A DNA stretch of 64,000 nt from assembly GCA_964247055.1 (NCBI GenBank), contig OZ176052.1, positions 13,082,001-13,146,000 of the forward strand, read 5' to 3'. Below are positions 8,501 through 41,700 of this stretch, piece by piece; positions within the stretch are counted from its first letter, which is position 1, and the number at the start of each line of letters is the position of its first letter. The notes under the pieces were generated by a model, which saw only the letters and a list, made by a program, of their open reading frames with translations, was not told the origin of the DNA and made no database searches. The position numbers were made by a program, and so were the translations under genes. The stretch comes from Paragordius varius (Eukaryota > Animalia > Nematomorpha).

Positions 8501-8519
8501 TTAAACTTTGTCCTTAAAA

Positions 8520-11500
8520 ATCGGATATTGGTCACCGGTGAACAAAATTATTTTTTATACATTCTCTTACCAAGACTACATCAAAATATAGAGATAGTTT
8601 GACAAACTCTTTCATATCCGATTTTTACAACGATACTTTAAAAATTAATGTATAAAACTGGTCGTATCAATAAATCGCATCAATACTCAAGTTAAACTTT
8701 GTCCTTAAAAATCGAATATTGGTCACCGGTGAACAAAATTATTTTTTATACATTCTCTTAGTAAGACTACATCAAAATATAGAGATAGTTTGACAAACTC
8801 TATATCCGATTATTACAAGGATACTTTAAAAATTAGTGTATAAAACTAGTCGCATCAATACTCAAGTTAAATTTTGTCCTTAAAAATGGGATATTGATCA
8901 CCGGTGAACAAAACTATTTTTTATATATTCTCTTAGTAAGTCTACATCAAAATATAGAAATAGTTTGACAAACTCTTTCATATCCGATTTTTACAACGAT
9001 ACTTTAAAAATTAATGTATAAAACTAGTCGTATCAATAAATCGCCTCAATACTCAAGTTAAACTTTGTCCTTAAAAATCGGATATTGGTCACCGGTGAAC
9101 AAAATTATTTTTTATACATTCTCTTAGTAGGACTACATCAAAATATAGAGATAGTTTGACAAACTCTTTCATATCCGATTTTTACAACGATACTTTAAAA
9201 ATTAATGTATTAAACTAGTCGCATCAATACTCAAGTTAAACTTTGTCCTTGAAAATCGGATATTGGTCACCGGTGAACAAAATTATTTTTTATACATTCT
9301 CTTAGCAAGACTACATCAAAATATAGAGATAGTTTGGCAAACTCTTTCATCCGATTTTTACAACGATACTTTAAAAATTAATGTATAAAACTAGTCGCAT
9401 CAATATTCAAGTTAAACTTTGTCCTTAAAAATCGAATATTGGTCACCGGTGAACAAAATTATTTTTTATACATTCTCTTAGTAACACTACATCAAAATAT
9501 AGAGATAGTTTGACAAACTCTATATCCGATTATTACAAGGATACATTAAAAATTAGTGTTAAAACTAGTCGCATCAATACTCAAGTTAAATTTTGTCCTT
9601 AAAAATGTGATATTGATCACCGGTGAACAAAACTATTTTTATACATTCTCTTAGTAAGTCTACATCAAAATATAGAAATAGTTTGACAAACTCTTTCATA
9701 TCCGATTTTTACAACGATACTTTAAAAATTAATGTAAAATAGTCGCATCAATAAATCGCATCAATACTCAAGTTAAATTTTGTCCTTAAAAATCGGATAT
9801 TGGTCACCGGTGAACAAAATTATTTTTTATACATTCTCTTAGTAGGACTACATAAAAATATAGAGATAGTTTGGCAAACTCTTTCATATCCGATTTTTAC
9901 AACGATACTTTAAAAATTGATGTATTAAACTAGTCGCATCTATACTCAAGTTAAACTTTGTCCTTAAAAATCGGATATTGGTCACCGGTGAACAAAATTA
10001 TTTTTTATACATTCTCTTAGCAAGACTACATCAAAATATAGAGATAGTTTGGCAAACTCTTTCATCCGATTTTTACAACGATACTTTAAAAATTAATGTA
10101 TAAAACTAGTCGCATCAATATTCAAGTTAAACTTTGTCCTTAAAAATCGAATATTGGTCACCGGTGAACAAAATTATTTTTTATACATTCTCTTAGTAAG
10201 ACTACATCAAAATATAGAGATAGTTTGACAAACTCTATATCCGATTATTACAAGGATACTTTAAAAATTAGTGTATAAAACTAGTCGCATCAATACTCAA
10301 GTTAAACTTTGTCCTTAAAAATCGGATATTGGTCACCGGTGAACAAAATTATTTTTTATACATTCTCTTACCAAGACTACATCAAAATATAGAGATAGTT
10401 TGACAAACTCTTTCATATCCGATTTTTACAACGATACTTTAAAAATTAATGTATAAAACTGGTCGTATCAATAAATCGCATCAATACTCAAGTTAAACTT
10501 TGTCCTTAAAAATCGAATATTGGTCACCGGTGAACAAAATTATTTTTTGTACATTCTCTTAGTAAGACTACATCAAAATATAGAGATAGTTTGACAAACT
10601 CTATATCCGATTATTACAAGGATACTTTAAAAATTAGTGTATAAAACTACTCGCATCAATACTCAAGTTAAATTTTGTCCTTAAAAATGGGATATTGATC
10701 ACCGGTGAACAAAACTATTTTTTATACATTCTCTTAGTAAGTCTACATCAAAATATAGAAATAGTTTGACAAACTCTTTCATATCCGATTTTTACAACGA
10801 TACTTTAAAAATTAATGTATAAAACTGGTCGTATCAATAAATCGCATCAATACTCAAGTTAAACTTTGTCCTTAAAAATCGAATATTGGTCACCGGTGAA
10901 CAAAATTATTTTTTATACATTCTCTTAGTAAGACTACATCAAAATATAGAGATAGTTTGACAAACTCTATATCCGATTATTACAAGGATACTTTAAAAAT
11001 TAGTGTATAAAACTAGTCGCATCAATACTCAAGTTAAATTTTGTCCTTAAAAATGGGATATTGATCACCGGTGAACAAAACTATTTTTTATACATTCTCT
11101 TAGTAAGTCTACATCAAAATATAGAAATAGTTTGACAAACTCTTTCATATCCGATTTTTACAACGATACTTTAAAAATTAATGTATAAAACTAGTCGTAT
11201 CAATAAATCGCCTCAATACTCAAGTTAAACTTTGTCCTTAAAAATCGGATATTGGTCACCGGTGAACAAAATTATTTTTTATACATTCTCTTAGTAGGAC
11301 TACATCAAAATATAGAGATAGTTTGACAAACTCTTTCATATCCGATTTTTACAACGATACTTTAAAAATTAATGTATTAAACTAGTCGCATCAATACTCA
11401 AGTTAAACTTTGTCCTTGAAAATCGGATATTGGTCACCGGTGAACAAAATTATTTTTTATACATTCTCTTAGCAAGACTACATCAAAATATAGAGATAGT

Positions 11501-14500
11501 TTGGCAAACTCTTTCATCCGATTTTTACAACGATACTTTAAAAATTAATGTATAAAACTAGTCGCATCAATATTCAAGTTAAACTTTGTCCTTAAAAATC
11601 GAATATTGGTCACCGGTGAACAAAATTATTTTTTATACATTCTCTTAGTAACACTACATCAAAATATAGAGATAGTTTGACAAACTCTATATCCGATTAT
11701 TACAAGGATACATTAAAAATTAGTGTTAAAACTAGTCGCATCAATACTCAAGTTAAATTTTGTCCTTAAAAATGTGATATTGATCACCGGTGAACAAAAC
11801 TATTTTTATACATTCTCTTAGTAAGTCTACATCAAAATATAGAAATAGTTTGACAAACTCTTTCATATCCGATTTTTACAACGATACTTTAAAAATTAAT
11901 GTAAAATAGTCGCATCAATAAATCGCATCAATACTCAAGTTAAATTTTGTCCTTAAAAATCGGATATTGGTCACCGGTGAACAAAATTATTTTTTATACA
12001 TTCTCTTAGTAGGACTACATAAAAATATAGAGATAGTTTGGCAAACTCTTTCATATCCGATTTTTACAACGATACTTTAAAAATTGATGTATTAAACTAG
12101 TCGCATCTATACTCAAGTTAAACTTTGTCCTTAAAAATCGGATATTGGTCACCGGTGAACAAAATTATTTTTTATACATTCTCTTAGCAAGACTACATCA
12201 AAATATAGAGATAGTTTGGCAAACTCTTTCATCCGATTTTTACAACGATACTTTAAAAATTAATGTATAAAACTAGTCGCATCAATATTCAAGTTAAACT
12301 TTGTCCTTAAAAATCGAATATTGGTCACCGGTGAACAAAATTATTTTTTATACATTCTCTTAGTAAGACTACATCAAAATATAGAGATAGTTTGACAAAC
12401 TCTATATCCGATTATTACAAGGATACTTTAAAAATTAGTGTATAAAACTAGTCGCATCAATACTCAAGTTAAACTTTGTCCTTAAAAATCGGATATTGGT
12501 CACCGGTGAACAAAATTATTTTTTATACATTCTCTTACCAAGACTACATCAAAATATAGAGATAGTTTGACAAACTCTTTCATATCCGATTTTTACAACG
12601 ATACTTTAAAAATTAATGTATAAAACTGGTCGTATCAATAAATCGCATCAATACTCAAGTTAAACTTTGTCCTTAAAAATCGAATATTGGTCACCGGTGA
12701 ACAAAATTATTTTTTGTACATTCTCTTAGTAAGACTACATCAAAATATAGAGATAGTTTGACAAACTCTATATCCGATTATTACAAGGATACTTTAAAAA
12801 TTAGTGTATAAAACTACTCGCATCAATACTCAAGTTAAATTTTGTCCTTAAAAATGGGATATTGATCACCGGTGAACAAAACTATTTTTTATACATTCTC
12901 TTAGTAAGTCTACATCAAAATATAGAAATAGTTTGACAAACTCTTTCATATCCGATTTTTACAACGATACTTTAAAAATTAATGTATAAAACTGGTCGTA
13001 TCAATAAATCGCATCAATACTCAAGTTAAACTTTGTCCTTAAAAATCGAATATTGGTCACCGGTGAACAAAATTATTTTTTATACATTCTCTTAGTAAGA
13101 CTACATCAAAATATAGAGATAGTTTGACAAACTCTATATCCGATTATTACAAGGATACTTTAAAAATTAGTGTATAAAACTAGTCGCATCAATACTCAAG
13201 TTAAATTTTGTCCTTAAAAATGGGATATTGATCACCGGTGAACAAAACTATTTTTTATACATTCTCTTAGTAAGTCTACATCAAAATATAGAAATAGTTT
13301 GACAAACTCTTTCATATCCGATTTTTACAACGATACTTTAAAAATTAATGTATAAAACTAGTCGTATCAATAAATCGCATCAATACTCAAGTTAAACTTT
13401 GTCCTTAAAAATCGGATATTGGTCACCGGTGAACAAAATTATTTTTTATACATTCTCTTAGTAGGACTACATCAAAATATAGAGATAGTTTGACAAACTC
13501 TTTCATATCCGATTTTTACAACGATACTTTAAAAATTAATGTATTAAACTAGTCGCATCAATACTCAAGTTAAACTTTGTCCTTGAAAATCGGATATTGG
13601 TCACCGGTGAACAAAATTATTTTTTATACATTCTCTTAGCAAGACTACATCAAAATATAGAGATAGTTTGGCAAACTCTTTCATCCGATTTTTACAACGA
13701 TACTTTAAAAATTAATGTATAAAACTAGTCGCATCAATATTCAAGTTAAACTTTGTCCTTAAAAATCGAATATTGGTCACCGGTGAACAAAATTATTTTT
13801 TATACATTCTCTTAGTAACACTACATCAAAATATAGAGATAGTTTGACAAACTCTATATCCGATTATTACAAGGATACATTAAAAATTAGTGTTAAAACT
13901 AGTCGCATCAATACTCAAGTTAAATTTTGTCCTTAAAAATGTGATATTGATCACCGGTGAACAAAACTATTTTTATACATTCTCTTAGTAAGTCTACATC
14001 AAAATATAGAAATAGTTTGACAAACTCTTTCATATCCGATTTTTACAACGATACTTTAAAAATTAATGTAAAATAGTCGCATCAATAAATCGCATCAATA
14101 CTCAAGTTAAATTTTGTCCTTAAAAATCGGATATTGGTCACCGGTGAACAAAATTATTTTTTATACATTCTCTTAGTAGGACTACATAAAAATATAGAGA
14201 TAGTTTGGCAAACTCTTTCATATCCGATTTTTACAACGATACTTTAAAAATTGATGTATTAAACTAGTCGCATCTATACTCAAGTTAAACTTTGTCCTTA
14301 AAAATCGGATATTGGTCACCGGTGAACAAAATTATTTTTTATACATTCTCTTAGCAAGACTACATCAAAATATAGAGATAGTTTGGCAAACTCTTTCATC
14401 CGATTTTTACAACGATACTTTAAAAATTAATGTATAAAACTAGTCGCATCAATATTCAAGTTAAACTTTGTCCTTAAAAATCGAATATTGGTCACCGGTG

Positions 14501-17328
14501 AACAAAATTATTTTTTATACATTCTCTTAGTAAGACTACATCAAAATATAGAGATAGTTTGACAAACTCTATATCCGATTATTACAAGGATACTTTAAAA
14601 ATTAGTGTATAAAACTAGTCGCATCAATACTCAAGTTAAACTTTGTCCTTAAAAATCGGATATTGGTCACCGGTGAACAAAATTATTTTTTATACATTCT
14701 CTTACCAAGACTACATCAAAATATAGAGATAGTTTGACAAACTCTTTCATATCCGATTTTTACAACGATACTTTAAAAATTAATGTATAAAACTGGTCGT
14801 ATCAATAAATCGCATCAATACTCAAGTTAAACTTTGTCCTTAAAAATCGAATATTGGTCACCGGTGAACAAAATTATTTTTTGTACATTCTCTTAGTAAG
14901 ACTACATCAAAATATAGAGATAGTTTGACAAACTCTATATCCGATTATTACAAGGATACTTTAAAAATTAGTGTATAAAACTACTCGCATCAATACTCAA
15001 GTTAAATTTTGTCCTTAAAAATGGGATATTGATCACCGGTGAACAAAACTATTTTTTATACATTCTCTTAGTAAGTCTACATCAAAATATAGAAATAGTT
15101 TGACAAACTCTTTCATATCCGATTTTTACAACGATACTTTAAAAATTAATGTATAAAACTGGTCGTATCAATAAATCGCATCAATACTCAAGTTAAACTT
15201 TGTCCTTAAAAATCGAATATTGGTCACCGGTGAACAAAATTATTTTTTATACATTCTCTTAGTAAGACTACATCAAAATATAGAGATAGTTTGACAAACT
15301 CTATATCCGATTATTACAAGGATACTTTAAAAATTAGTGTATAAAACTAGTCGCATCAATACTCAAGTTAAATTTTGTCCTTAAAAATGGGATATTGATC
15401 ACCGGTGAACAAAACTATTTTTTATACATTCTCTTAGTAAGTCTACATCAAAATATAGAAATAGTTTGACAAACTCTTTCATATCCGATTTTTACAACGA
15501 TACTTTAAAAATTAATGTATAAAACTAGTCGTATCAATAAATCGCATCAATACTCAAGTTAAACTTTGTCCTTAAAAATCGGATATTGGTCACCGGTGAA
15601 CAAAATTATTTTTTATACATTCTCTTAGTAGGACTACATCAAAATATAGAGATAGTTTGACAAACTCTTTCATATCCGATTTTTACAACGATACTTTAAA
15701 AATTAATGTATTAAACTAGTCGCATCAATACTCAAGTTAAACTTTGTCCTTGAAAATCGGATATTGGTCACCGGTGAACAAAATTATTTTTTATACATTC
15801 TCTTAGCAAGACTACATCAAAATATAGAGATAGTTTGGCAAACTCTTTCATCCGATTTTTACAACGATACTTTAAAAATTAATGTATAAAAATAGTCGCA
15901 TCAATATTCAAGTTAAACTTTGTCCTTAAAAATCGAATATTGGTCACCGGTGAACAAAATTATTTTTTATACATTCTCTTAGTAACACTACATCAAAATA
16001 TAGAGATAGTTTGACAAACTCTATATCCGATTATTACAAGGATACATTAAAAAGTGTATAAAACTACTCGCATCAATACTCAAGTTAAATTTTGTCCTTA
16101 AAAATGTGATATTGATCACCGGTGAACAAAACTATTTTTTATACATTCTCTTAGTAAGTCTACATCAAAATATAGAAATAGTTTGACAAACTCTTTCATA
16201 TCCGATTTTTACAACGATACTTTAAAAATTAATGTAAAATAGTCGCATCAATAAATCGCATCAATACTCAAGTTAAATTTTGTCCTTAAAAATCGGATAT
16301 TGGTCACCGGTGAACAAAATTATTTTTTATACATTCTCTTAGTAGGACTACATAAAAATATAGAGATAGTTTGGCAAACTCTTTCATATCCGATTTTTAC
16401 AACGATACTTTAAAAATTGATGTATTAAACTAGTCGCATCTATACTCAAGTTAAACTTTGTCCTTAAAAATCGGATATTGGTCACCGGTGAACAAAATTA
16501 TTTTTTATACATTCTCTTAGCAAGACTACATCAAAATATAGAGATAGTTTGGCAAACTCTTTCATCCGATTTTTACAACGATACTTTAAAAATTAATGTA
16601 TAAAACTAGTCGCATCAATATTCAAGTTAAACTTTGTCCTTAAAAATCGAATATTGGTCACCGGTGAACAAAATTATTTTTTATACATTCTCTTAGTAAG
16701 ACTACATCAAAATATAGAGATAGTTTGACAAACTCTATATCCGATTATTACAAGGATACTTTAAAAATTAGTGTATAAAACTAGTCGCATCAATACTCAA
16801 GTTAAACTTTGTCCTTAAAAATCGGATATTGGTCACCGGTGAACAAAATTATTTTTTATACATTCTCTTACCAAGACTACATCAAAATATAGAGATAGTT
16901 TGACAAACTCTTTCATATCCGATTTTTACAACGATACTTTAAAAATTAATGTATAAAACTGGTCGTATCAATAAATCGCATCAATACTCAAGTTAAACTT
17001 TGTCCTTAAAAATCGAATATTGGTCACCGGTGAACAAAATTATTTTTTGTACATTCTCTTAGTAAGACTACATCAAAATATAGAGATAGTTTGACAAACT
17101 CTATATCCGATTATTACAAGGATACTTTAAAAATTAGTGTATAAAACTACTCGCATCAATACTCAAGTTAAATTTTGTCCTTAAAAATGGGATATTGATC
17201 ACCGGTGAACAAAACTATTTTTTATACATTCTCTTAGTAAGTCTACATCAAAATATAGAAATAGTTTGACAAACTCTTTCATATCCGATTTTTACAACGA
17301 TACTTTAAAAATTAATGTATAAAACTAG
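8520..17328. repeat. HOR domain 2: 12-monomer HOR, 2167-bp period, about 4 near-identical copies
   Basis: gtaacactac at 9481, 11648, 13815, 15982 and the G of ccttGaaa at 9251, 11418, 13585, 15752 are all exactly 2167 bp apart. The unit contains an internal 366-bp two-monomer duplication (gtaagtctac at 15071 and 15437). Confidence 0.95.
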
Positions 17329-17556
17329 CGCGCGCGTTCGACACCTTCAAATACAATTCTTATTACTTATAACAATTATTACAATTATCATTGTTATCTA
17401 TTTATTTTCCAAGTTTATTCTATCTTTTATCAGTTTTTCTCATTCTTTCAACAAATGCACGAAATTACCTTAGTAAAATATTCCAATTCAATAGGATTCG
17501 TATTCTATTTTATTTCATTTTTACTAATTGATATATATTTATGTATTTCTTTTTCA

Positions 17557-17657
17557 ATTATTACTATTATTATTATATTTTTGGTTAAAATTTTGATTCT
17601 TTTTTAGATTATTATTATTATTATATTTTTGGTTAAAATTTTTTGATTCTTTTTTAG
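17557..17657 (+). repeat. Tandem duplication of about 50 bp in the LINE 5' leader
   Basis: Two copies of (att)n-atatttttggttaaaatttt(tt)gattcttttttag at 17557-17607 and 17608-17657. Confidence 0.9.
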
Positions 17658-17735
17658 TTGCTTTATATATTAGTTACTATATATCTTAGTGTTTATTATC
17701 TACATTATTCTTCTTTATTGTATTTTTTGTTTTTT

Positions 17736-19502
17736 ATGAGTGTTTTTTGTAAGGCGTGCAGGCCAGACCCGGCCAGTCGCTGCACGGAGGTAGGGGCCAA
17801 TAGGGATAATGAAGGTTGTAGAATGTGTTTTGCCAGTATAAATGTTGGTTCGTTAAAAAGTAAGTTATATGATTTAGTTGAAACTATGAGGGTAAAAAAA
17901 GTAAATTTTTTGTGCATTCAGGAGACCAGATACCGTGGAAATGGTACTAAGACGTTAGAGGGTAATTATAAAATGTTTTATTCAGGTTCTACGGATGGTT
18001 ACTGTGGGGTTGCCATAATAGTGTGCCCAAGATTTGCCAATCAAGTAATTGAGGTTAGACGTGCTGACAGTAGAATCATAAGTGTCGACGTATTGTTAAA
18101 TAAGAGGGTTTTTACTATCTTTAGCGTTTATGCCCCCCAGATAGGTTTAACTAAACCGGAGAAAGATAAATTCTATGATTTGTTAGACGCAGAAATGACT
18201 TCATTAACGAAAGACAGAGAAATTATATTTTGTGGTGATTTCAACGGGCACGTGGGACAAAATAGGAGAGGTTTTGAACCTTGGCACGGCGGAAAAGGTT
18301 ACGGGGTTATAAATGAAGGAGGGGCTAGTTTATTAAGATTTGCCCAATCTTATAACTTTGCTATAACAAATACTTTTTTTACGAAAAGGGATAGCCACTT
18401 AATTACCTACGAAAGTGGAAATAAAAAGTCACAAATTGATTATATTCTAGTGCCACGAAAGTCTTTAAAGTTTGTTTTGGACTGCAAAGTGATACCTAAC
18501 TTGCAGATTAGCACACAACACAATTTAATTATGTGTAAATATATGACAGATATACCAATAAATGCCAAAAAGCCTAAGCTTATAGCGCCGAAGGTAATTA
18601 AATGGGATTCTCTAAGAAACAGTAAAGAAAGATTTGTAGAAACGGTAGACATACTAGACAGGAACAGTGATCCAGAAAGTGTTTGGTCTCAGGTGGCAAA
18701 AAAAATAAGAGAGGCGGCAGTTAAGGTGTGCGGAATGAAAGGTGGCAGAAACCAGGTTTATAGAGAGGCATGGCTGAAAGACGAAAAAATAATTCTGAAA
18801 TCGCGAGAGAAAAGAAAAGCTTTTAAAATGTGGAGGTTTACCCACCAAGCAGAAGACAAGGAAAAATATAAAAGGATTAATAAGGAACTTAAAAGGCTTG
18901 TAAGATTGGTCAAAAAAGAAAAGACGGCATCATTATATGAAGAGTTGAACAGTAAGCAAGGTCTAAACAAAGTTTTTAAAATTGCTCGACAAAGACACAG
19001 AAGAAAGCTGGACTTGCCCCCTTACGCGACAGCTATTAAAGATAAGAAAGGCAAATTACTCGTTGAGGAAGCGAAAATATTGAAAAGGTGGAAAGAATAT
19101 TTCCAGGAGCTTGAATTGGGCGTCAGTGAAACAAGTTTACCCGAAACACCAGATTATAAATCTGCGCATATTGAAAGTATAACAAAGGAAGAAGTCCAGG
19201 CTGGTTTTGAAGAGATGTCAATAAATAAGGCTGCAGGTCCAGACGATATTAACATAAACTGTTGGAAAATATTGTCAGAAAAAGGTATTGAATTTTTAGC
19301 AGATATTTTTAATAATGTAGTTACTACAGGTATGATACCAACCGAATGGAAGGAGAGTTTCACTGTTCCCATTTTCAAGGGTAAAGGAGATATTAATGAT
19401 TGTAATAATTACAGAGGGATAAGATTGATGTCGCATACAATGAAGTTATTTGAGAAAGTACTAGAGAAAAGAATAAGAAAAATGGTTAGTATAGAGCAGT
19501 GA
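17736..19502 (+). CDS. RTE ORF, 5' part: apurinic-like endonuclease plus start of the RT domain, truncated by the hAT
   Basis: The ORF track starts at a TTG (17658); in-frame ATGs are at 17736 and 17823. APE motifs: ASINVG, CIQETR, SVYAP, GDFNGH, IDYIL, TQH. Early RT motifs: KAAGPD, NYRGIRLMSHTMKLFEK. The final CAG TGA (19497-19502) belongs to the hAT left TIR. Confidence 0.93.
   Translation: MSVFCKACRPDPASRCTEVGANRDNEGCRMCFASINVGSLKSKLYDLVETMRVKKVNFLCIQETRYRGNGTKTLEGNYKMFYSGSTDGYCGVAIIVCPRFANQVIEVRRADSRIISVDVLLNKRVFTIFSVYAPQIGLTKPEKDKFYDLLDAEMTSLTKDREIIFCGDFNGHVGQNRRGFEPWHGGKGYGVINEGGASLLRFAQSYNFAITNTFFTKRDSHLITYESGNKKSQIDYILVPRKSLKFVLDCKVIPNLQISTQHNLIMCKYMTDIPINAKKPKLIAPKVIKWDSLRNSKERFVETVDILDRNSDPESVWSQVAKKIREAAVKVCGMKGGRNQVYREAWLKDEKIILKSREKRKAFKMWRFTHQAEDKEKYKRINKELKRLVRLVKKEKTASLYEELNSKQGLNKVFKIARQRHRRKLDLPPYATAIKDKKGKLLVEEAKILKRWKEYFQELELGVSETSLPETPDYKSAHIESITKEEVQAGFEEMSINKAAGPDDININCWKILSEKGIEFLADIFNNVVTTGMIPTEWKESFTVPIFKGKGDINDCNNYRGIRLMSHTMKLFEKVLEKRIRKMVSIEQ
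19489..19496 (+). repeat. 8-bp target site duplication, left copy (GTATAGAG)
   Basis: Identical to 21284-21291. The 8-bp length is diagnostic of hAT, and the central TA fits the Buster nnnTAnnn preference. Confidence 0.97.
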
Positions 19503-19508
19503 TACTCA
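19497..19508 (+). repeat. hAT left terminal inverted repeat
   Basis: CAGTGATACTCA, immediately after the TSD. Confidence 0.93.
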
Positions 19509-19512
19509 AACC

Positions 19513-19537
19513 GCGGCCCGCGGGCCGCATGCGGCCC
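19513..19537. other. hAT subterminal motif array: three alternating GCGGCCC copies at 9-bp spacing
   Basis: gcggcccgcgggccgcatgcggccc forms two overlapping perfect 16-bp palindromes (19513-19528 and 19522-19537). GGCCC recurs near the right end at 21223 and 21252. Probable transposase-binding sites (inference). Confidence 0.75.
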
Positions 19538-19966
19538 TAAGAGCGCTTTAAAATTGCCCTATGACCATATTGGTACTTAAATTATTTTTTTATTGATGTA
19601 CACATAAACAAATTTTCGCTTATTTTAATATTAATTTATTTTCTTTAAAATTAATTTTGTTTTATTATTTACCCAATTTGAAATGTAGAAAAATTTCCCT
19701 ACATTAAAATGATTTCAAATTTTGGCATACTCTTTTCTATTTTGAAATTTTTATTCCATTCCTTTTTGTATTTAAGCAAGCCTTTCGCCCAAACTTCCAT
19801 ATACATATTCTTTTCATTGCTATCCTGCATCATTTTTAATAACTTATGCCCATAAATATTTTTCAAATCAATATCATTAAATTTCGCCTGTTTTTTTATA
19901 GCATAATTCAAATTATATTCCTATTTTTTTTGAAAAAATCATTATATTTAAATATAAATTCAAAGA

Positions 19967-21055
19967 ATGACATCTAATGGTAAAAAACGTAAATTCTCCG
20001 ATAAAAATCGTTCCTTTATAAAAGAATGGGAAGAAAAAATTTTTGTCGTTTTAAATAAAAATGTTTTTTACCTGCCTCATATGTAAGGACAACATAATCA
20101 ACGAGGAATATTTAAAATTTTTACCAATGAAGAATACACGAAAGGAATCGATTAGAACTTTTTACGATAATAATGGTATATCTATGAAATTGGTTTCGCT
20201 GCAGAGATGGCTGTGCCTCTATGATTGGAATAAACAAAGAATTTATTCATCTTTAAAAACAAAATAATTTGAAAAATATTTTATCCTTTCCCTGCTTTAT
20301 TCATCAGCAAAACTTGGTTTCGCGTGTAAAAGATGAATCACCCAATTCAGTAACTAAAACCTAGTGGATATAGTTAACCACATCCGTGGCAGAGAATTAA
20401 ACCTCCGTTTAAAACAACTTCTGATTATTAGCCTGCCTTTGCGACATTACTAAAATACAAGTCTTCAAGGGAGCAAAATAGTAACCCAATTTGCTATTAA
20501 AATATTTGCTTTTGAAGCAATAATATATAAACAAGATTATATACACTCCCATATTTTCCAACACTTAAAACTATTCATGAAGAAAATGGAATTTAATGCG
20601 GAGATTAATTTAATAACAGACAATCATTTAACATTTCTATCTAATAAGTTCAAATTTTGAGAAAGAAATATTTAAAAATTCATTGTAACTCGTTGTCATG
20701 GCATATGGGTATCTCCAATAGTAAGCAACTTGAACATTTCGGTTTTGATCAGGCGCATATCATAGAATTCATAGATTCTAAAAATTATTCTAATTAGGAG
20801 TCTATATTCAAAGAAATCATAGCGAAGAAAGATATGGGTTTTGGCAAGATGTGCCAAATAAATATGAAAATATTAAAATATGCTCAAGTTATCCTAACTG
20901 TTTTTCCCTCAACTTACACGTGTGTGAGACGGCATATTCAAAAATGAAATATGTCAAGAATATATACATAAATCGCTTAACCGAATCAAATGGACGACAT
21001 GTTAAGATTAACCTGTCATGAGGCGAAACCGAATTTGTCAAAAATTATTGGTTAA
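19967..21055 (+). pseudogene. Decayed, internally deleted hAT transposase (GTF2IRD2/SPIN/Buster-like)
   Basis: Manual translation across frameshifts gives MTSNGKKRKFSDKNRSFIKEWEEK..TCLIC (N-terminus and start of the BED finger), KLVS..DGCASMIG (catalytic Asp motif), PCFIHQQNL (CxxH), VNHIRGRELN, SLQGSK, and FPSTYTC/ETAYSKMK..NRLT (catalytic Glu and dimerisation region, with a TG-repeat frameshift at about 20921-20926). It has multiple stops and frameshifts. Confidence 0.88.
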
Positions 21056-21271
21056 TATCAAAATAAATGTTATAAAAATATTTAATTTTAAACTAAATGG
21101 TGCAAAACGCGTTTTTAGCTGGATTTACATGCGATCCGCCAAAAATTCATTGTGCTGATTTAGAGTTAAATATGTACATATGTGTCAAATAGCTATGGAA
21201 TATTTTCCATCATAAGGTTCATGGCCCTCGAAAAAAAAATATATTTTATTTGGCCCGTCAAATTTTTTTGG

Positions 21272-21283
21272 TGAGTACCACTG
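21272..21283 (-). repeat. hAT right terminal inverted repeat
   Basis: TGAGTACCACTG, one mismatch to the left TIR, immediately before the TSD. Confidence 0.93.
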
Positions 21284-21291
21284 GTATAGAG
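21284..21291 (+). repeat. 8-bp target site duplication, right copy (GTATAGAG)
   Basis: Identical to 19489-19496. Confidence 0.97.
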
Positions 21292-22416
21292 GGTAATCAA
21301 TTTGGTTTTATTCCAGGAAAATCCACCATTGATCCAATTCACGCAGTAAGAAGGCTAATCGAGAAGCATATAGAAATGAAAAAGGAGTTGCATGGTATTT
21401 GTATTGATATTGAAAAGGCATTTGACAGAATACCTCGGAGCACAATATGGTGGAGCTTAAGACGGAAAAAGGTCCCTGAAAGTTACATAAAGATTTTACA
21501 AAGCATGTACGAATCACACCAAACCAAAATTAAAACACACCAGGGAATATCAGGTCCTATTACAATAAACGAAGGGGTCTATCAGGGGTCTGCAATCAGC
21601 CCGTTACTATTTATAATATGCATGGACGAAATTTCAAAAGAAGTAGGACAACATGATGGCTGGTATTTTCTTTATGCAGACGACCTAATAGTCCTGTCCG
21701 ACGAGTTGCATGAATTAAAAGAATCGGTGGGTAAATGGATTGATGTGTTACGACGATGCGGATTAAAAGTTAACAAAAAGAAAACGGAACTGATAAATTT
21801 TGGTGGGAAAAAACGAGAAATAGAATTAGAAGAAGGGTGGGTATTAAAAGGTCAGGAAGAATGCAAATATTTAGGAGCAATATTAGCAGCTGATGGATCT
21901 TTAACACTTGATATTAATTTAAGAATTCGAAATAGTTGGGCAAATTACAAAAAGATCTCAAGTGTTTTGTGCGACAAAAATATTGACCTAAAAGTAAAGG
22001 GTAAGATTTACAGTGCTGTTGTACAACCAACAATGATGTACAACTCACAGACATGGGCAATAAAGAAATCAGAAGAGAGGCACTTTGAGGTTACTGAAAT
22101 GAGAATGCTTAGATTGATGTGCGGTGTAACGAGGAAAGACAAGGTGAAGAATGTCTACATAAGAGGAAGTACGGAAATCAAATCGGTAACGCAAAAGATG
22201 ATGGTAAATCGTTTAAGATGGTTTGGACATGTTGAAAGAAGAGATAAAAATTACATTGGTAAAAAGATTGATGATTATATTGTAAAAGGCAAGAGGGGAA
22301 AAGGGCGCCCTAAAACGCGATGGATAGATACAGTTAAGAGGGACATGGCAAAACTAAACCTAAAACGCGAAGACGCCTTAGACAGGGTTCTATGGCGAAA
22401 TAGTTTACGGATATGA
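21292..22416 (+). CDS. RTE ORF, 3' part: reverse transcriptase core and C-terminal region
   Basis: Motifs QFGFIPGKST, IDIEKAFDRI, QGSAISPLLF, YADD (21673-21684), YLG. The first 14 residues of the listed ORF (21250-21291, TTG start) come from the hAT right end and TSD and are not LINE sequence. Confidence 0.95.
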   Translation, partial: GNQFGFIPGKSTIDPIHAVRRLIEKHIEMKKELHGICIDIEKAFDRIPRSTIWWSLRRKKVPESYIKILQSMYESHQTKIKTHQGISGPITINEGVYQGSAISPLLFIICMDEISKEVGQHDGWYFLYADDLIVLSDELHELKESVGKWIDVLRRCGLKVNKKKTELINFGGKKREIELEEGWVLKGQEECKYLGAILAADGSLTLDINLRIRNSWANYKKISSVLCDKNIDLKVKGKIYSAVVQPTMMYNSQTWAIKKSEERHFEVTEMRMLRLMCGVTRKDKVKNVYIRGSTEIKSVTQKMMVNRLRWFGHVERRDKNYIGKKIDDYIVKGKRGKGRPKTRWIDTVKRDMAKLNLKREDALDRVLWRNSLRI

Positions 22417-22440
22417 CCGCTCGAAAGAGTGATATCATAT
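22411..22440 (+). other. Predicted 3'-terminal RNA stem-loop of the LINE with GAAA tetraloop
   Basis: ATATGA-C-CGCTC-GAAA-GAGTG-ATA-TCATAT: a 6-bp outer stem and a 5-bp inner stem (one G.U), overlapping the stop codon and just before the tail. Confidence 0.7.
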
Positions 22441-22445
22441 AATGT

Positions 22446-22466
22446 AATTATTATAATTATTATTAT
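22446..22466 (+). repeat. LINE 3' microsatellite tail, imperfect (ATT/TAT)n
   Basis: aattattataattattattat; the last TAT is shared with the resuming satellite. Confidence 0.85.
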
Positions 22467-25400
22467 CAATAAATCGCATCAATACTCAAGTTAAACTTTG
22501 TCCTTAAAAATCGGATATTGGTCACCGGTGAACAAAATTATTTTTTATACATTCTCTTAGTAGGACTACATCAAAATATAGAGATAGTTTGACAAACTCT
22601 TTCATATCCGATTTTTACAACGATACTTTAAAAATTAATGTATTAAACTAGTCGCATCAATACTCAAGTTAAACTTTGTCCTTGAAAATCGGATATTGGT
22701 CACCGGTGAACAAAATTATTTTTTATACATTCTCTTAGCAAGACTACATCAAAATATAGAGATAGTTTGGCAAACTCTTTCATCCGATTTTTACAACGAT
22801 ACTTTAAAAATTAATGTATAAAACTAGTCGCATCAATAAATAAGTTAAACTTTGTCCTTAAAAATCGAATATTGGTCACCGGTGAACAAAATTATTTTTT
22901 ATACATTCTCTTAGTAACACTACATCAAAATATAGAGATAGTTTGACAAACTCTATATCCGATTATTACAAGGATACATTAAAAATTAGTGTATAAAACT
23001 AGTCGCATCAATACTCAAGTTAAATTTTGTCCTTAAAAATGTGATATTGATCACCGGTGAACAAAACTATTTTTTATACATTCTCTTAGTAAGTCTACAT
23101 CAAAATATAGAAATAGTTTGACAAACTCTTTCATATCCGATTTTTACAACGATACTTTAAAAATTAATGTAAAATAGTCGCATCAATAAATCGCATCAAT
23201 ACTCAAGTTAAATTTTGTCCTTAAAAATCGGATATTGGTCACCGGTGAACAAAATTATTTTTTATACATTCTCTTAGTAGGACTACATAAAAATATAGAG
23301 ATAGTTTGGCAAACTCTTTCATATCCGATTTTTACAACGATACTTTAAAAATTAGTGTATAAAACTAGTCGCATCAATACTCAAGTTAAATTTTGTCCTT
23401 AAAAATGGGATATTGATCACCGGTGAACAAAACTATTTTTTATACATTCTCTTAGCAAGACTACATCAAAATATAGAGATAGTTTGGCAAACTCTTTCAT
23501 ATCCGATTTTTACAACGATACTTTAAAAATTGATGTATTAAACTAGTCGCATCTATACTCAAGTTAAACTTTGTCCTTAAAAATCGGATATTGGTCACCG
23601 GTGAACAAAATTATTTTTTATACATTCTCTTAGCAAGACTACATCAAAATATAGAGATAGTTTGGCAAACTCTTTCATCCGATTTTTACAACGATACTTT
23701 AAAAATTAATGTATAAAACTAGTCGCATCAATATTCAAGTTAAACTTTGTCCTTAAAAATCGAATATTGGTCACCGGTGAACAAAATTATTTTTTATACA
23801 TTCTCTTAGTAAGACTACATCAAAATATAGAGATAGTTTGACAAACTCTATATCCGATTATTACAAGGATACTTTAAAAATTAGTGTATAAAACTAGTCG
23901 CATCAATACTCAAGTTAAACTTTGTCCTTAAAAATCGGATATTGGTCACCGGTGAACAAAATTATTTTTTATACATTCTCTTACCAAGACTACATCAAAA
24001 TATAGAGATAGTTTGACAAACTCTTTCATATCCGATTTTTACAACGATACTTTAAAAATTAATGTATAAAACTGGTCGTATCAATAAATCGCATCAATAC
24101 TCAAGTTAAACTTTGTCCTTAAAAATCGAATATTGGTCACCGGTGAACAAAATTTTTTTTATACATTCTCTTAGTAAGACTACATCAAAATATAGAGATA
24201 GTTTGACAAACTCTATATCCGATTATTACAAGGATACTTTAAAAATTAGTGTATAAAACTAGTCGCATCAATACTCAAGTTAAATTTTGTCCTTAAAAAT
24301 GGGATATTGATCACCGGTGAACAAAACTATTTTTTATACATTCTCTTAGTAAGTCTACATCAAAATATAGAAATAGTTTGACAAACTCTTTCATATCCGA
24401 TTTTTACAACGATACTTTAAAAATTAATGTATAAAACTAGTCGTATCAATAAATCGCATCAATACTCAGGTTAAACTTTGTCCTTAAAAATCGGATATTG
24501 GTCACCGGTGAACAAAATTATTTTTTATACATTCTCTTAGTAGGACTACATCAAAATATAGAGATAGTTTGACAAACTCTTTCATATCCGATTTTTACAA
24601 CGATACTTTAAAAATTAATGTATTAAACTAGTCGCATCAATACTCAAGTTAAACTTTGTCCTTGAAAATCGGATATTGGTCACCGGTGAACAAAATTATT
24701 TTTTATACATTCTCTTAGCAAGACTACATCAAAATATAGAGATAGTTTGGCAAACTCTTTCATCCGATTTTTACAACGATACTTTAAAAATTAATGTATA
24801 AAACTAGTCGCATCAATATTCAAGTTAAACTTTGTCCTTAAAAATCGAATATTGGTCACCGGTGAAAAAAATTATTTTTTATACATTCTCTTAGTAACAC
24901 TACATCAAAATATAGAGATAGTTTGACAAACTCTATATCCGATTATTACAAGGATACATTAAAAATTAGTGTATAAAACTAGTCGCATCAATACTCAAGT
25001 TAAATTTTGTCCTTAAAAATGTGATATTGATCACCGGTGAACAAAACTATTTTTTATACATTCTCTTAGTAAGTCTACATCAAAATATAGAAATAGTTTG
25101 ACAAACTCTTTCATATCCGATTTTTACAACGATACTTTAAAAATTAATGTAAAATAGTCGCATCAATAAATCGCATCAATACTCAAGTTAAATTTTGTCC
25201 TTAAAAATCGGATATTGGTCACCGGTGAACAAAATTATTTTTTATACATTCTCTTAGTAGGACTACATAAAAATATAGAGATAGTTTGGCAAACTCTTTC
25301 ATATCCGATTTTTACAACGATACTTTAAAAATTGATGTATTAAACTAGTCGCATCTATACTCAAGTTAAACTTTGTCCTTAAAAATCGGATATTGGTCAC

Positions 25401-28400
25401 CGGTGAACAAAATTATTTTTTATACATTCTCTTAGCAAGACTACATCAAAATATAGAGATAGTTTGGCAAACTCTTTCATCCGATTTTTACAACGATACT
25501 TTAAAAATTAATGTATAAAACTAGTCGCATCAATATTCAAGTTAAACTTTGTCCTTAAAAATCGAATATTGGTCACCGGTGAACAAAATTATTTTTTATA
25601 CATTCTCTTAGTAAGACTACATCAAAATATAGAGATAGTTTGACAAACTCTATATCCGATTATTACAAGGATACTTTAAAAATTAGTGTATAAAACTAGT
25701 CGCATCAATACTCAAGTTAAACTTTGTCCTTAAAAATCGGATATTGGTCACCGGTGAGCAAAATTATTTTTTATACATTCTCTTACCAAGACTACATCAA
25801 AATATAGAGATAGTTTGACAAACTCTTTCATATCCGATTTTTACAACGATACTTTAAAAATTAATGTATAAAACTGGTCGTATCAATAAATCGCATCAAT
25901 ACTCAAGTTAAACTTTGTCCTTAAAAATCGAATATTGGTCACCGGTGAACAAAATTATTTTTTATACATTCTCTTAGTAAGACTACATCAAAATATAGAG
26001 ATAGTTTGACAAACTCTATATCCGATTATTACAAGGATACATTAAAAATTAGTGTATAAAACTAGTCGCATCAATACTCAAGTTAAATTTTGTCCTTAAA
26101 AATGTGATATTGATCACCGGTGAACAAAACTATTTTTTATACATTCTCTTAGTAAGTCTACATCAAAATATAGAAATAGTTTGACAAACTCTTTCATATC
26201 CGATTTTTACAACGATACTTTAAAAATTAATGTAAAATAGTCGCATCAATAAATCGCATCAATACTCAAGTTAAATTTTGTCCTTAAAAATCGGATATTG
26301 GTCACCGGTGAACAAAATTATTTTTTATACATTCTCTTAGTAGGACTACATAAAAATATAGAGATAGTTTGGCAAACTCTTTAATATCCGATTTTTACAA
26401 CGATACTTTAAAAATTGATGTATTAAACTAGTCGCATCTATACTCAAGTTAAACTTTGTCCTTAAAAATCGGATATTGGTCACCGGTGAACAAAATTATT
26501 TTTTATACATTCTCTTAGCAAGACTACATCAAAATATAGAGATAGTTTGGCAAACTCTTTCATCCGATTTTTACAACGATACTTTAAAAATTAATGTATA
26601 AAACTAGTCGCATCAATATTCAAGTTAAACTTTGTCCTTAAAAATCGAATATTGGTCACCGGTGAACAAAATTATTTTTTATACATTCTCTTAGTAAGAC
26701 TACATCAAAATATAGAGATAGTTTGACAAACTCTATATCCGATTATTACAAGGATACTTTAAAAATTAGTGTATAAAACTAGTCGCATCAATACTCAAGT
26801 TAAACTTTGTCCTTAAAAATCGGATATTGGTCACCGGTGAACAAAATTATTTTTTATACATTCTCTTACCAAGACTACATCAAAATATAGAGATAGTTTG
26901 ACAAACTCTTTCATATCCGATTTTTACAACGATACTTTAAAAATTAATGTATAAAACTGGTCGTATCAATAAATCGCATCAATACTCAAGTTAAACTTTG
27001 TCCTTAAAAATCGAATATTGGTCACCGGTGAACAAAATTATTTTTTATACATTCTCTTAGTAAGACTACATCAAAATATAGAGATAGTTTGACAAACTCT
27101 ATATCCGATTATTACAAGGATACTTTAAAAATTAGTGTATAAAACTAGTCGCATCAATACTCAAGTTAAATTTTGTCCTTAAAAATGGGATGTTGATCAC
27201 CGGTGAACAAAACTATTTTTTATACATTCTCTTAGTAAGTCTACATCAAAATATAGAAATAGTTTGACAAACTCTTTCATATCCGATGTTTACAACGATA
27301 CTTTAAAAATTAATGTAAAATAGTCGCATCAATAAATCGCATCAATACTCAAGTTAAATTTTGCCCTTAAAAATCGGATATTGGTCACCGGTGAACAAAA
27401 TTATTTTTTATACATTCTCTTAGTAAGACTACATCAAAATATAGAGATAGTTTGACAAACTCTATATCCGATTATTACAAGGATACTTTAAAAATTAGTG
27501 TATAAAACTAGTACCATCAATACTCAAGTTAAACTTTGTCCTTAAAAATCGGATATTGGTCACCGGTGAACAAAATTATTTTTTATACATTCTCTTAGCA
27601 TGACTACATCAAAATATAGAGATAGTTTGACAAACTCTTTCATATCCGATTTTTACAACGATACTTTAAAAATTAATGTATAAAACTGGTCGTATCAATA
27701 AATCGCATCAATACTCAAGTTAAACTTTGTCCTTAAAAATCGGATATTGGTCACCGGTGAACAAAATTATTTTTTATACATTCTCTTAGCAAGACTACAT
27801 CAAAATATAGAGATAGTTTGGCAAACTCTTTCATCCGATTTTTACAACGATACTTTAAAAATTAATGTATAAAACTAGTCGCATCAATATTCAAATTAAA
27901 CTTTGTCCTTAAAAATCGAATATTGGTCACCGGTGAACAAAATTATTTTTTAAACATTCTCTTAGTAAGACTACATCAAAATATAGAGATAGTTTGACAA
28001 ACTCTATATCCGATTATTACAAGGATACTTTAAAAATTAGTGTATAAAACTAGTCGCATCAATACTCAAGTTAAACTTTGTCCTTAAAAATCGGATATTG
28101 GTCACCGGTGAACAAAATTATTTTTTATACATTCTCTCAGCATGACTACATCAAAATATAGAGATAGTTTGACAAACTCTTTCATATCCGATTTTTACAA
28201 CGATACAAAATTAATGTATAAAACTGGTCGTATCAATAAATCGCATCAATACTCAAGTTAAATTTTGTCCTTAAAAATCGGATATTGGTCACCGGTGAAC
28301 AAAATTATTTTTTATACATTCTCTTAGTAGGACTACATAAAAATATAGAGATAGTTTGGCAAACTCTTTCATATCCGATTTTTACAACGATACTTTAAAA

Positions 28401-31400
28401 ATTAATGTATTAAACTAGTCGCATCAATACTCAAGTTAAACTTTGTCCTTGAAAATCGGATATTGGTCACCGGTGAACAAAATTATTTTTTATACATTCT
28501 CTTAGCAAGACTACATCAAAATATAGAGATAGTTTGGCAAACTCTTTCATCCGATTTTTACAACGATACTTTAAAAATTAATGTATAAAACTAGTCGCAT
28601 CAATATTCAAGTTAAACTTTGTCCTTAAAAATCGAATATTGGTCACCGGTGAACAAAATTATTTTTTATACATTCTCTTAGTAAGACTACATCAAAATAT
28701 AGAGATAGTTTGACAAACTCTATATCCGATTATTACAAGGATACATTAAAAATTAGTGTATAAAACTAGTCGCATCAATACTTAAGTTAAATTTTGTCCT
28801 TAAAAATGTTATATTGATCACCGGTGAACAAAACTATTTTTTATACATTCTCTTAGTAAACATCAAAATATAGAAATAGTTTGACAAACTCTTTCATATC
28901 CGATTTTTACAACGATACTTTAAAAATTAATGTAAAATAGTCGCATCAATAAATCGCATCAATACTCAAGTTAAATTTTGTCCTTAAAAATCGGATATTG
29001 GTCACCGGTGAACAAAATTATTTTTTATACATTCTCTTAGTAGGACTACATAAAAATATAGAGATAGTTTGGCAAACTCTTTCATATCCGATTTTTACAA
29101 CGATACTTTAAAAATTGATGTATTAAACTAGTCGCATCTATACTCAAGTTAAACTTTGTCCTTAAAAATCGGATATTGGTCACCGGTGAACAAAATTATT
29201 TTTTATACATTCTCTTAGCAAGACTACATCAAAATATAGAGATAGTTTGGCAAACTCTTTCATCCGATTTTTACAACGATACTTTAAAAATTAATGTATT
29301 AAACTAGTCGCATCAATACTCAAGTTAAACTTTGTCCTTGAAAATCGGATATTGGTCACCGGTGAACAAAATTATTTTTTATACATTCTCTTAGCAAGAC
29401 TACATCAAAATATAGAAATAGTTTGACAAACCTTTTCATATCCGATTTTTACAACGATACTTTAAAAATTAATGTAAAATAGTCGCATCAATAAATCGCA
29501 TCAATACTCAAGTTAAATTTTGTCCTTAAAAATCGGATATTGGTCACCGGTGAACAAAATTATTTTTTATACATTCTCTTAGTAGGACTACATAAAAATA
29601 TAGAGATAGTTTGGCAAACTCTTTCATATCCGATTTTTACAACGATACTTTAAAAATTGATGTATTAAACTAGTCGCTTCTATACTCAAGTTAAACTTTG
29701 TCCTTAAAAATCGGATATTGGTCACCGGTGAACAAAATTATTTTTTATACATTCTCTTAGCAAGACTACATCAAAATATAGAGATAGTTTGGCAAACTCT
29801 TTCATCCGATTTTTACAACGATACTTTAAAAATTAATGTATAAAACTAGTCGCATCAATATTCAAGTTAAACTTTGTCCTTAAAAATCGAATATTGGTCA
29901 CCGGTGAACAAAATTATTTTTTATACATTCTCTTAGTAAGACTACATCAAAATATAGAGATAGTTTGACAAACTCTATATCCGATTATTACAAGGATACT
30001 TTAAAAATTAGTGTATAAAACTAGTCGCATCAATACTCAAGTTAAACTTTGACCTTAAAAATCGGATATTGGTCACCGGTGAACAAAATTATTTTTTATA
30101 CATTCTCTTACCAAGACTACATCAAAATATAGAGATAGTTTGACAAACTCTTTCATATCCGATTTTTACAACGATACTTTAAAAATTAATGTATAAAACT
30201 GGTCGTATCAATAAATCGCATCTATACTCAAGTTAAACTTTGTCCTTAAAAATCGAATATTGGTCACCGGTGAACAAAATTATTTTTTATACATTCTCTT
30301 AGTAATACATCAAAATATAGAGATAGTTTGACAAACTCTATATCCGATTATTACAAGGATACTTTAAAAATTAGTGTATAAAACTAGTCGCATCAATACT
30401 CAAGTTAAATTTTGTCCTTAAAAATGGGATATTGATCACCGGTGAACAAAACTATTTTTTATACATTCTCTTAGTAAGTCTACATCAAAATATAGAAATA
30501 GTTTGACAAACTCTTTCATATCCGATTTTTACAATGATACTTTAAAAATTAATGTAAAATAGTCGCATCAATAAATCGCATCAATATTCAAGTTAAACTT
30601 TGTCCTTAAAAATCGAATATTGGTCACCGGTCAAAATTATTTTTTATACATTCTCTTAGTAAGACTACATCAAAATATAGAGATAGTTTGACAAACTCTA
30701 TATCCGATTATTACAAGGATACTTTAAAAATTAGTGTATAAAACTAGTCGCATCAATACTCAAGTTAAACTTTGTCCTTAAAAATCGGATATTGGTCACC
30801 GGTGAACAAAATTATTTTTTATACATTCTCTTACCAAGACTACATCAAAATATAGAGATAGTTTGACAAACTCTTTCATATCCGATTTTTACAACGATAC
30901 TTTAAAAATTAATGTATAAAACTGGTCGTATCAATAAATCGCATCTATACTCAAGTTAAACTTTGTCCTTAAAAATCGAATATTGGTCACCGGTGAACAA
31001 AATTATTTTTTATACATTCTCTTAGTAATACAAAATATAGAGATAGTTTGACAAACTCTATATCCGATTATTACAAAGATACTTTAAAAATTAGTGTATA
31101 AAACTAGTCGCATCAATACTCAAGTTAAATTTTGTCCTTAAAAATGGGATATTGATCACCGGTGAACAAAACTATTTTTTATACATTCTCTTAGTAAGTC
31201 TACATCAAAATATAGAAATAGTTTGACAAACTCTTTCATATCCGATTTTTACAATGATACTTTAAAAATTAATGTAAAATAGTCGCATCAATAAATCGCA
31301 TCAATACTCAAGTTAAATTTTGTCCTTAAAAATCGGATATTGGTCACCGGTGAACAAAATTATTTTTTGTACATTCTCTTAGTAAGACTACATCAAAATA
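22464..31400. repeat. HOR domain 3: same monomer types as domain 2 in shorter or rearranged units (10-, 11-, 6-, 4-mers)
   Basis: gtaacac at 22914 and 24894 (1980 bp). catctatac markers are about 1800 bp apart, then about 1083 bp apart (23552, 25352, 26435). acaatgatac at 30531 and 31251 (720 bp). Confidence 0.8.
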
Positions 31401-39900: not shown

Positions 39901-41700
39901 CAAGTTAAACTTTGTCCTTAAAAATCGAATATTGGTCACCGGTGAACAAAATTATTTTTTATACATTCTCTTAGTAAGACTACATCAAAATATAGAGATA
40001 GTTTGACAAACTCTATATCCGATTATTACAAGGATACATTAAAAATTAGTGTATAAAACTAGTCGCATCAATACTCAAGTTAAACTTTGTCCTTAAAAAT
40101 CGGATATTGGTCACCGGTGAACAAAATTATTTTTTATACATTCTCTTAGCAAGACTACATCAAAATATAGAAATAGTTTGACAAACTCTTTCATCCGATT
40201 TTTACAACGATACTTTAAAAATTAATGTATAAAACTAGTCGCATCAATATTCAAGTTAAACTTTGTCCTTAAAAATCGAATATTGGTCACCGGTGAACAA
40301 AATTATTTTTTATACATTCTCTTAGTAAGACTACATCAAAATATAGAGATAGTTTGACACACTCTATATCCGATTATTACAAGGATACATTAAAAATTAT
40401 TGTATAAAACTAGTCGCATCAATACTCAAGTTAAACTTTGTCCTTAAAAATCGGATATTGGTCACCGGTGAACAAAATTATTTTTTATACATTCTCTTTA
40501 CATCAAAATATAGAGATAGTTTGGCAAACTCTTTCATCCGATTTTTACAGCGATACTTTAAAAATTAATGTATTAAAATAGTCGCATCAATACTCAAGTT
40601 AAATTTTGTCCTTAAAAATGGGATATTGATCACCGGTGAACAAAACTATTTTTTATACATTCTCTTAGTAAGACTACATCAAAATATAGAAATAGTTTGA
40701 CAAACTCTTTCATATCCGATTTTTACAACGATACTTTAAAAATTAATGTATTAAAATAGTCGCATCAATACTCAAGTTAAACTTTGTCCTTAAAAATCGG
40801 ATATTGGTCACCGGTGAACAAAATTATTTTTTATACATTCTCTTAGTAGGACTACATAAAAATATAATAGTTTGGCAAACTCTTTCATATCCGATTTTTA
40901 CAACGATACTTTAAAAATTAATGTATAAAACTAGTCGCGTCAATACTCAAGTTAAACTTTGTCCTTAAAAATCGAATATTGGTCACCGGTGAACAAAATA
41001 ATTTTTATACATTCTCTTAGTAGGACTACATCAAAATATAGAGATAGTTTGGCAAACTCTTTCATCCGATTTTTACAACGATACTTTAAAAATTAATGTA
41101 GTCGCATCAATACTCAAGTTAAACTTTGTCCTTAAAAATCGGATATTGGTCACCGGTGAACAAAATTATTTTTTATACATTCTCTTAGCAAGACTACATC
41201 AAAATATAGAAATAGTTTGACAAACTCCTTCATATCCGATTTTAACAACGATACTTTAAAAATTAATGTATTAAACTAGTCGCATCAATACTCAAGTTAA
41301 ACTTTGTCCTTAAAAATCGGATATTGGTCACCGGTGAACAAAATTATTTTTTATACATTCTCTTAGTAAGACTACATCAAAATATAGAGATAGTTTGACA
41401 AACTCTATATCCGATTATTACAAGGATACATTAAAAATTAGTGTATAAAACTAGTCGCATCAATACTCAAGTTAAACTTTGTCCTTAAAAATCGAATATT
41501 GGTCACCGGTGAACAAAATTATTTTTTATACATTCTCTTAGTAAGACTACATCAAAATATAGAGATAGTTTGACAAACTCTATATCCGATTATTACAAGG
41601 ATACATTAAAAATTAGTGTATAAAACTAGTCGCATCAATACTCAAGTTAAACTTTGTCCTTAAAAATCGAATATTGGTCACCGGTGAACAAAATTATTTT
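34000..41700. repeat. HOR domain 4: 13-monomer HOR, 2265-bp period, 3 copies, rich in the 175-bp monomer variant
   Basis: gacacactc at 35826, 38091, 40356; caataaacttt at 35201, 37466, 39731; gtaatactac at 34921, 37186, 39451. All spacings are 2265 bp. Confidence 0.95.

Follow-up and report, generated by a model that had tools for sequence, protein, structure and literature searches.

In nested insertions the inner element must have inserted later than the element that hosts it, and transposons nested in satellite DNA are common. Here we describe such a nest in 64,000 nucleotides of contig OZ176052.1 from Paragordius varius (Nematomorpha), a stretch referred to as the window, in which an RTE-like long interspersed nuclear element (LINE) lies within a satellite array and is interrupted by a transposon of the hAT type. 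RTE elements are characterized by a very short 3' untranslated region (UTR) with AT-rich tri- to pentanucleotide repeats instead of poly(A) (PMC1291365; the repeats also PMC3747384), and described members include RTE-1, with 3,291 bp and 1,066 aa, and SR3, with 3,211 bp and 922 aa (PMC1291365). The target signature nnnTAnnn is characteristic of Buster hAT elements (PMC3517528, PMC3499496); when these and other hAT elements excise, hairpin formation and end joining typically leave a small insertion or deletion behind (PMC3499496). The Buster family contains non-autonomous deletion derivatives mobilised in trans, and the Mar MITEs (transposable elements of the miniature inverted-repeat type) of Drosophila are non-autonomous analogues.

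Compared with these systems, the locus is an ordinary nest formed by two families that are new but of known kinds, the hAT family having been compared within this genome only. Its practical value is in annotation, where it supplies clean reference boundaries for both transposon families of an animal genome that is AT-rich and poorly sampled.

The nest and the order of its insertions

The whole window is one AT-rich array with 27% GC, interrupted solely at 17329-22466, where GC content rises to 32-34%. Tandem Repeats Finder (TRF) reported a single 178-bp array spanning 1032-64000. Variant monomers of 191 bp repeat every 366 or ~717 bp on both sides of the interruption, and the monomer phase resumes past it, within ~5 bp, when 5,137 bp are taken out. 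Because this 191-bp series stays in phase across the block, the interruption can be treated as a simple insertion into the array.

The inserted block holds a 3,343-bp retrotransposon, encoding an apurinic/apyrimidinic endonuclease (APE) and a reverse transcriptase (RT), in two parts, 17329-19496 and 21292-22466 (Table 1). The parts are separated by a hAT element with precise ends: the left junction at 19496/19497 reads GTATAGAG/CAGTGATACTCA, and the right junctions at 21283/21284 and 21291/21292 read TGAGTACCACTG/GTATAGAG/GGTAATCAA. The 8-bp target-site duplication, GTATAGAG, is perfect on both sides, and the terminal inverted repeats (TIRs), CAGTGATACTCA and CAGTGGTACTCA (reverse complement), match at 11 of 12 positions. 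A sequence-only reading of the window had proposed a three-level nest of exactly this kind, and it holds base for base.

Table 1. Features of the nest and of its satellite flanks, in window coordinates.
Feature	Position	Strand	Remarks
178-bp satellite, left flank	1032..17328	.	TRF period 178; uniform 27% GC
LINE 5' UTR, 407 nt	17329..17735	+	~8-10 nt of family 5' end absent
LINE open reading frame, piece A, 587 codons	17736..19496	+	APE endonuclease (~17835-18458), linker, RT motif 1; stop-free
hAT target-site duplication, left copy	19489..19496	.	GTATAGAG; direct reading
Non-autonomous decayed hAT (Buster-type), 1,787 bp	19497..21283	+	TIRs, 8-bp duplication, relatives
hAT transposase gene remains	19958..21018	+	Frameshifted, internally deleted; open stretches resemble L049/L048 transposase
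hAT target-site duplication, right copy	21284..21291	.	GTATAGAG; direct reading
LINE open reading frame, piece B, 374 codons + TGA	21292..22416	+	RT motifs 2-7 (RVT_1 ~21295-21882), C-terminal region; stop-free
LINE 3' UTR, 50 nt	22417..22466	+	ATT-type trinucleotide repeats at end, no poly(A); last TAT common to satellite target; siblings end alike
178-bp satellite, right flank	22467..64000	.	TRF, 91% matches

The order of the two insertions is established by the other copies of the LINE. Besides the window copy, the genome (110.6 Mb in 44 contigs) contains no fewer than 29 near full-length copies that share 88-98% identity with the 5' piece and are called siblings below; all 29 siblings fetched are contiguous across the hAT site. 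A 21-mer spanning the empty site occurs genome-wide in 37 exact copies and in 33 with 1-2 mismatches (~70 in total), as compared with 2 matches for a control pattern. In the genome searches, the full hAT and the LINE 5' piece had a single matched locus in common, the window. The satellite thus received the LINE and the LINE then received the hAT, as had been proposed; the search for other copies and empty sites suggested earlier has been run in the genome, and the condition that every family member carries the hAT turned out clearly negative.

The LINE copy is young, in agreement with the earlier proposal: of its 3,343 nt, 12 (0.36%) are private substitutions, and the sibling closest to it differs by 1.1%. 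The hAT that post-dates it looks older in sequence, with 41 private substitutions (2.3%) and 11 private deletions, and the closest of its relatives is 4.4% away. When private change was counted against an equal number of nearest relatives, 41 of 1,787 positions were private in the hAT vs 11 of 3,343 in the LINE (Fisher p = 8e-11). This inversion can be explained by the cut-and-paste mode of movement, since such an element carries its earlier mutations along, and we infer that most of the private mutations of the hAT are older than its insertion at this site. With ~7x more private change in the hAT than in the LINE that inserted earlier, the locus is a textbook case of copy divergence failing to date cut-and-paste insertions.

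The interrupted retrotransposon

To check the reading frame that would result from hAT removal, arithmetic was combined with evidence from the two pieces of the open reading frame (ORF) and from the uninterrupted siblings. Piece A ends with RIRKMVSIE, after which CAG TGA of the hAT terminus ends the frame; the in-frame stop ascribed earlier to the TIR is indeed found, at 19500-19502. Piece B (21292-22413) opens with GNQFGFIPGKST and is followed by TGA at 22414-22416. The deletion of 19497-21291 considered in the sequence-only reading corresponds to the hAT plus one copy of the duplication, 1,795 bp, and joins the pieces in frame as claimed: the GAG that closes the duplication forms a codon in the frame of either piece, and 1795 = 3x598+1 agrees with the frame offset of the two ORFs (17658 and 21250). 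The joined ORF would have 587+374 = 961 codons from the ATG at 17736, or 932 aa with a start at M30 (the ATG at 17823), and both the stop-free pieces and the siblings corroborate its freedom from stops and frameshifts. In eight uninterrupted siblings (L002, L003, L005, L006, L007, L008, L010 and L017) the ORF is intact, exactly 961 aa long and has the same start, MSVFCKACRPDP.

The Pfam domain Exo_endo_phos (PF03372) was matched in piece A (4.4e-08, residues 34-241) and RVT_1 (PF00078) in piece B (2.3e-32, profile positions 40-204). As the latter match starts at profile position 40, the RT domain is split by the hAT between motifs 1 and 2. Together with Pfam, a direct reading of the motifs CIQET, GDFN, IDYI, STQHN, IDIEKAFD, QGSAISP and YADD supports the earlier statement that all APE and RT motifs are present. 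All eight catalytic residues checked (E63, D168, N170, D235 and H262 in the endonuclease; D626, D717 and D718 in the RT) are kept and are invariant in 33 distant homologues. Relative to the eight intact siblings, piece A shows 10-17 residue differences and piece B 2-9. Eight residue changes are private to the window copy, namely K25N, E195G, E219D, G305D, G328A, T365M, L491F and K657Q; all fall at positions variable among the 33 homologues, and E195G and L491F introduce residues outside the commonest ones at their positions. Judged from its sequence, "otherwise intact" is a fair description of the ORF.

The ends of the copy are less regular. Full-length siblings begin with GTTTT(T)ACACCCGCGTG (GTTTT(T)ACACC) beside their target duplications, whereas the window copy begins with CGCGCGCGTTCGACACC, ~8-10 nt further in. 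No target-site duplication was found at 17321-17345 and 22455-22490, whereas siblings have duplications of 11-19 bp. The target, a 191-bp variant monomer, reads AAAACTAGTCGTATCAATAAATCGC, from which TCG (up to TCGTAT) is gone, so that 3-6 bp were lost; the range reflects the TAT at the 3' junction, which may belong to the LINE tail or to the satellite. A ~50-bp tandem duplication is present inside the 5' UTR (window 17556-17657). A 5' ribozyme was sought with Rfam at a permissive threshold in the whole element and five siblings, and no such family was found, the sole match being a chance-level miRNA-like one in sibling L007.

The LINE is RTE-like, and the class named in the sequence-only reading holds at the level of architecture. 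Like RTE elements, it has a single major ORF with an N-terminal APE followed by the RT, one continuous ORF in siblings. No other plus-strand ORF of at least 60 aa occurs in its 5' UTR, and Pfam searches of the LINE ORF returned no match to RNase H, a restriction-like endonuclease or a gag-like ORF1 (an absence of match); the only extra match, PF14529, is related to PF03372 and lies below the cut-off. With 3,343 bp and 961 aa, the element falls in the ~3.2-3.9 kb size range of RTE elements and can be compared with RTE-1 and SR3, and its short 3' UTR ends in ATT-type repeats, as does that of every one of the 29 siblings. It differs from RTE elements in that the window copy was integrated without a target duplication.

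Protein searches used the intact ORF of a sibling (L005:379-3261:-) in place of the whole window protein. The best relatives, at 35-39% identity, are APE and RT proteins of 930-1,000 aa encoded on ~3.2-3.4-kb contigs. Because no protein in a collection of 5.8 billion sequences exceeds 39% identity, the LINE can be considered a family that is new, although its kind is known. Matches bearing names include 'craniofacial development protein 2-like' (CFDP2-like) proteins, a maize protein called 'LINE-1', and Caenorhabditis and Haemonchus proteins. Among solved structures, human L1 ORF2p comes closest (E = 1.6e-27), a match that does not discriminate between clades.

Full-length siblings measure 3,321-3,363 bp, and those with an intact ORF have 0-0.4% private substitutions, a range also given as 0-0.18%. 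The family is apparently active, and the window copy is one ordinary member of it. The 5' UTR differs in siblings of older subfamilies (L012, L014-L016 and L020-L029), whose alignments start only at element position ~281-289 or whose 5' ends read ACGCGCGCGCGTTCGACCAC, which suggests that the 5' UTR was replaced during the history of the family. A second, independent nest of the same two families is found at L040:3342-4249 (G000:C1:8146980-8151234), where the right terminus of another hAT adjoins another LINE copy in the C-terminal part of the ORF, at a different position; the other end of that hAT lies outside the locus. Given this second nest, the configuration of a hAT inside a LINE is not special.

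The inserted hAT element

The interior of the window hAT is decayed: its DNA is 84-85% identical to that of L049, a near-autonomous relative, over query positions 585-1786, and ~720 bp of the ORF are missing. Because its own pieces have no significant Pfam match, the identity of the family was drawn from its relatives, i.e. ~8 full-length copies in the genome and longer ones of ~2.3-2.4 kb. The window termini are identical to those of the relatives, including L049 and the copies at L032 and L033. The hAT dimerisation domain PF05699 was detected in L049 at 34.3 bits, vs a cut-off of 21.4, and genome matches to it fall in L047, L049, L052, L054 and L056; DUF4371 gave a weak signal in the relatives (21.3 bits vs a cut-off of 32.1). 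The hAT identity assigned earlier is therefore supported by TIRs, by 8-bp duplications and by relatives carrying PF05699.

Duplications of 8 bp flank 13 more members of the family, 11 of them perfectly, bringing the set to 14 with the window copy. Positions 4-5 are TA in all 14, whereas the frequency of TA in the background is 0.109; position 2 is T in 10 of 14 and position 7 is A in 10 of 14. By target consensus and domains, the window hAT is best classified as a Buster-type deletion derivative. In common with the Buster elements TcBuster and AeBuster1 it has nnnTAnnn 8-bp duplications and short TIRs that begin with CAG, and its relatives encode a ~612-aa transposase with the dimerisation domain and a weak DUF4371. 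It differs from Buster and Mar elements in being a 1.79-kb pseudogenised derivative, neither a short MITE nor an autonomous element.

Uninterrupted 612-aa frames were located by a genome search with the L049 transposase fragment at G000:C4:7018463-7019482 and G000:C2:1489470-1490489, with 96-97% identity to that fragment. These candidate autonomous copies probably provide a source of transposase in the genome. Given at least eight intact LINE ORFs, the open 612-aa frames and two hAT copies without mismatches, both the LINE and the hAT families are probably still mobile.

The two copies in question are non-autonomous elements of 1.82 kb, L032 (G000:C8:3346738-3348559) and L033 (G000:C8:3338107-3339924), which lie 8.6 kb apart. 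They show zero mismatches and one 3-bp indel, their flanks are unrelated, and their duplications differ (GTGTAGAT and CCCTACTG, respectively). This constitutes sequence evidence of a very recent transposition, which was probably local.

A 73-codon open frame on the minus strand lies in the 5' subterminal region of the window hAT (19702-19920). Its interpretation as a mirror copy of the transposase was rejected, as only two short non-colinear matches were obtained (E = 0.006 and 0.019).

Proposed history, competing explanations and the host array

The observations can be combined into a history of three events, satellite, LINE and hAT, which we consider highly probable as a whole: i) a 178-bp satellite array was in place; ii) a near full-length RTE-like LINE integrated into a 191-bp variant monomer, presumably by target-primed reverse transcription, in an atypical event that produced no target duplication, removed 3-6 bp of the target and left ~8-10 nt of the LINE 5' end absent; and iii) a non-autonomous 1.79-kb Buster-type hAT, probably already decayed and mobilised in trans by the 612-aa transposase of its family, was pasted into the RT-coding region, duplicating GTATAGAG and cutting the LINE protein down to 587 residues plus Q. 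That the LINE ORF is still open on both sides of the hAT simply reflects the youth of the copy, and no function of the nest is evident.

Several points weigh against this account. The nest is known from the assembled sequence of one haplotype. The private counts are based on 6 hAT and 29 LINE relatives and depend on this sampling, and the genome search scores the best candidates only, so that a closer hAT relative could be missed. The RTE assignment is based on architecture and the 3' tail rather than on an RT tree with labelled references, and eight stop-free stretches from inside the window hAT had no significant match in Pfam.

The sequence-only reading went further, in holding that the LINE had been inactivated by the hAT only and that precise or frame-preserving excision would restore a competent retrotransposon. 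Both statements are unproven. The copy as a whole has a shortened 5' end, an integration without a target duplication and the unusual residues introduced by E195G and L491F. Excision footprints are to be expected, and if both copies of the duplication are left, the extra 8 bp put the sequence out of frame. Few of the possible excision outcomes would preserve the frame, and in these the RT would be changed between motifs 1 and 2.

The most serious alternative is that the LINE was not competent even before the hAT inserted, so that the hAT is not its sole lesion, owing to 5' truncation, atypical integration or damaging missense change, and that excision would restore nothing; we regard this as possible, although unlikely. 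The 5' truncation, E195G and L491F may already impair the copy. It lacks the GTTTT(T)ACAC start of duplication-bounded siblings as well as a target duplication of its own, part of its target was lost, and two of its residues are not among the commonest in the 33 homologues; moreover, the 961-codon ORF holds eight of the 12 private changes of the element, which suggests neutral evolution since insertion. However, the ORF is fully open and the checked catalytic residues are all kept, few 5' bases are missing, and two of the private LINE changes go to the commonest residue of the homologues. In either case restoration would be of little consequence, because at least eight intact 961-aa copies exist elsewhere; beside them the broken window LINE is redundant, and it raises no new question.

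The opposite possibility is a dynamic one, in which both families are active, the locus is a young presence/absence polymorphism, and occasional frame-preserving excision by the 612-aa transposase re-arms a LINE parked in the satellite. Satellites would then serve as reservoirs of reversibly switched-off retrotransposons, but we consider this combination very improbable.

An assembly artefact, in which a collapsed satellite was wrongly joined to the hAT or to the entire LINE, might be suspected since satellite arrays are difficult to assemble. It is a shade less credible still in view of the clean hAT ends, the perfect 8-bp duplication that fits the target rule of the family, the monomer phase preserved over the LINE, and the private variants that distinguish the window LINE from every sibling. 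Finally, propagation of a LINE subfamily together with the hAT as a composite element is practically negligible: no support for it was found, the hAT/LINE junction at L040 being at a different LINE position, and against it stand the 29 of 29 siblings and ~70 empty-site matches without the hAT, the perfect 8-bp duplication as a mark of DNA-level insertion, and the fact that full-hAT and LINE 5'-piece matches coincide nowhere outside the window.

The host array itself has a higher-order structure. Between window positions 1026 and 56744, 59 monomers carry a 13-bp insertion and represent the 191-bp variant; their spacing is mostly 366 or ~717 bp in the 8.6-31.7 kb region, and rightward they become sparser and irregular. 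Sibling LINEs also occur in other tandem arrays: L008, which has an intact ORF, lies in (TTTTA)n (G000:C15:62127-67281), and L004 (G000:C3:1285592-1290755) sits in a ~98-bp repeat. Targeting of satellites by the LINE family is unsupported in our sample, in which 3 of 30 copies, the window copy included, lie in tandem arrays; most of the sampled copies have ordinary 11-19-bp duplications and reside in unique DNA.

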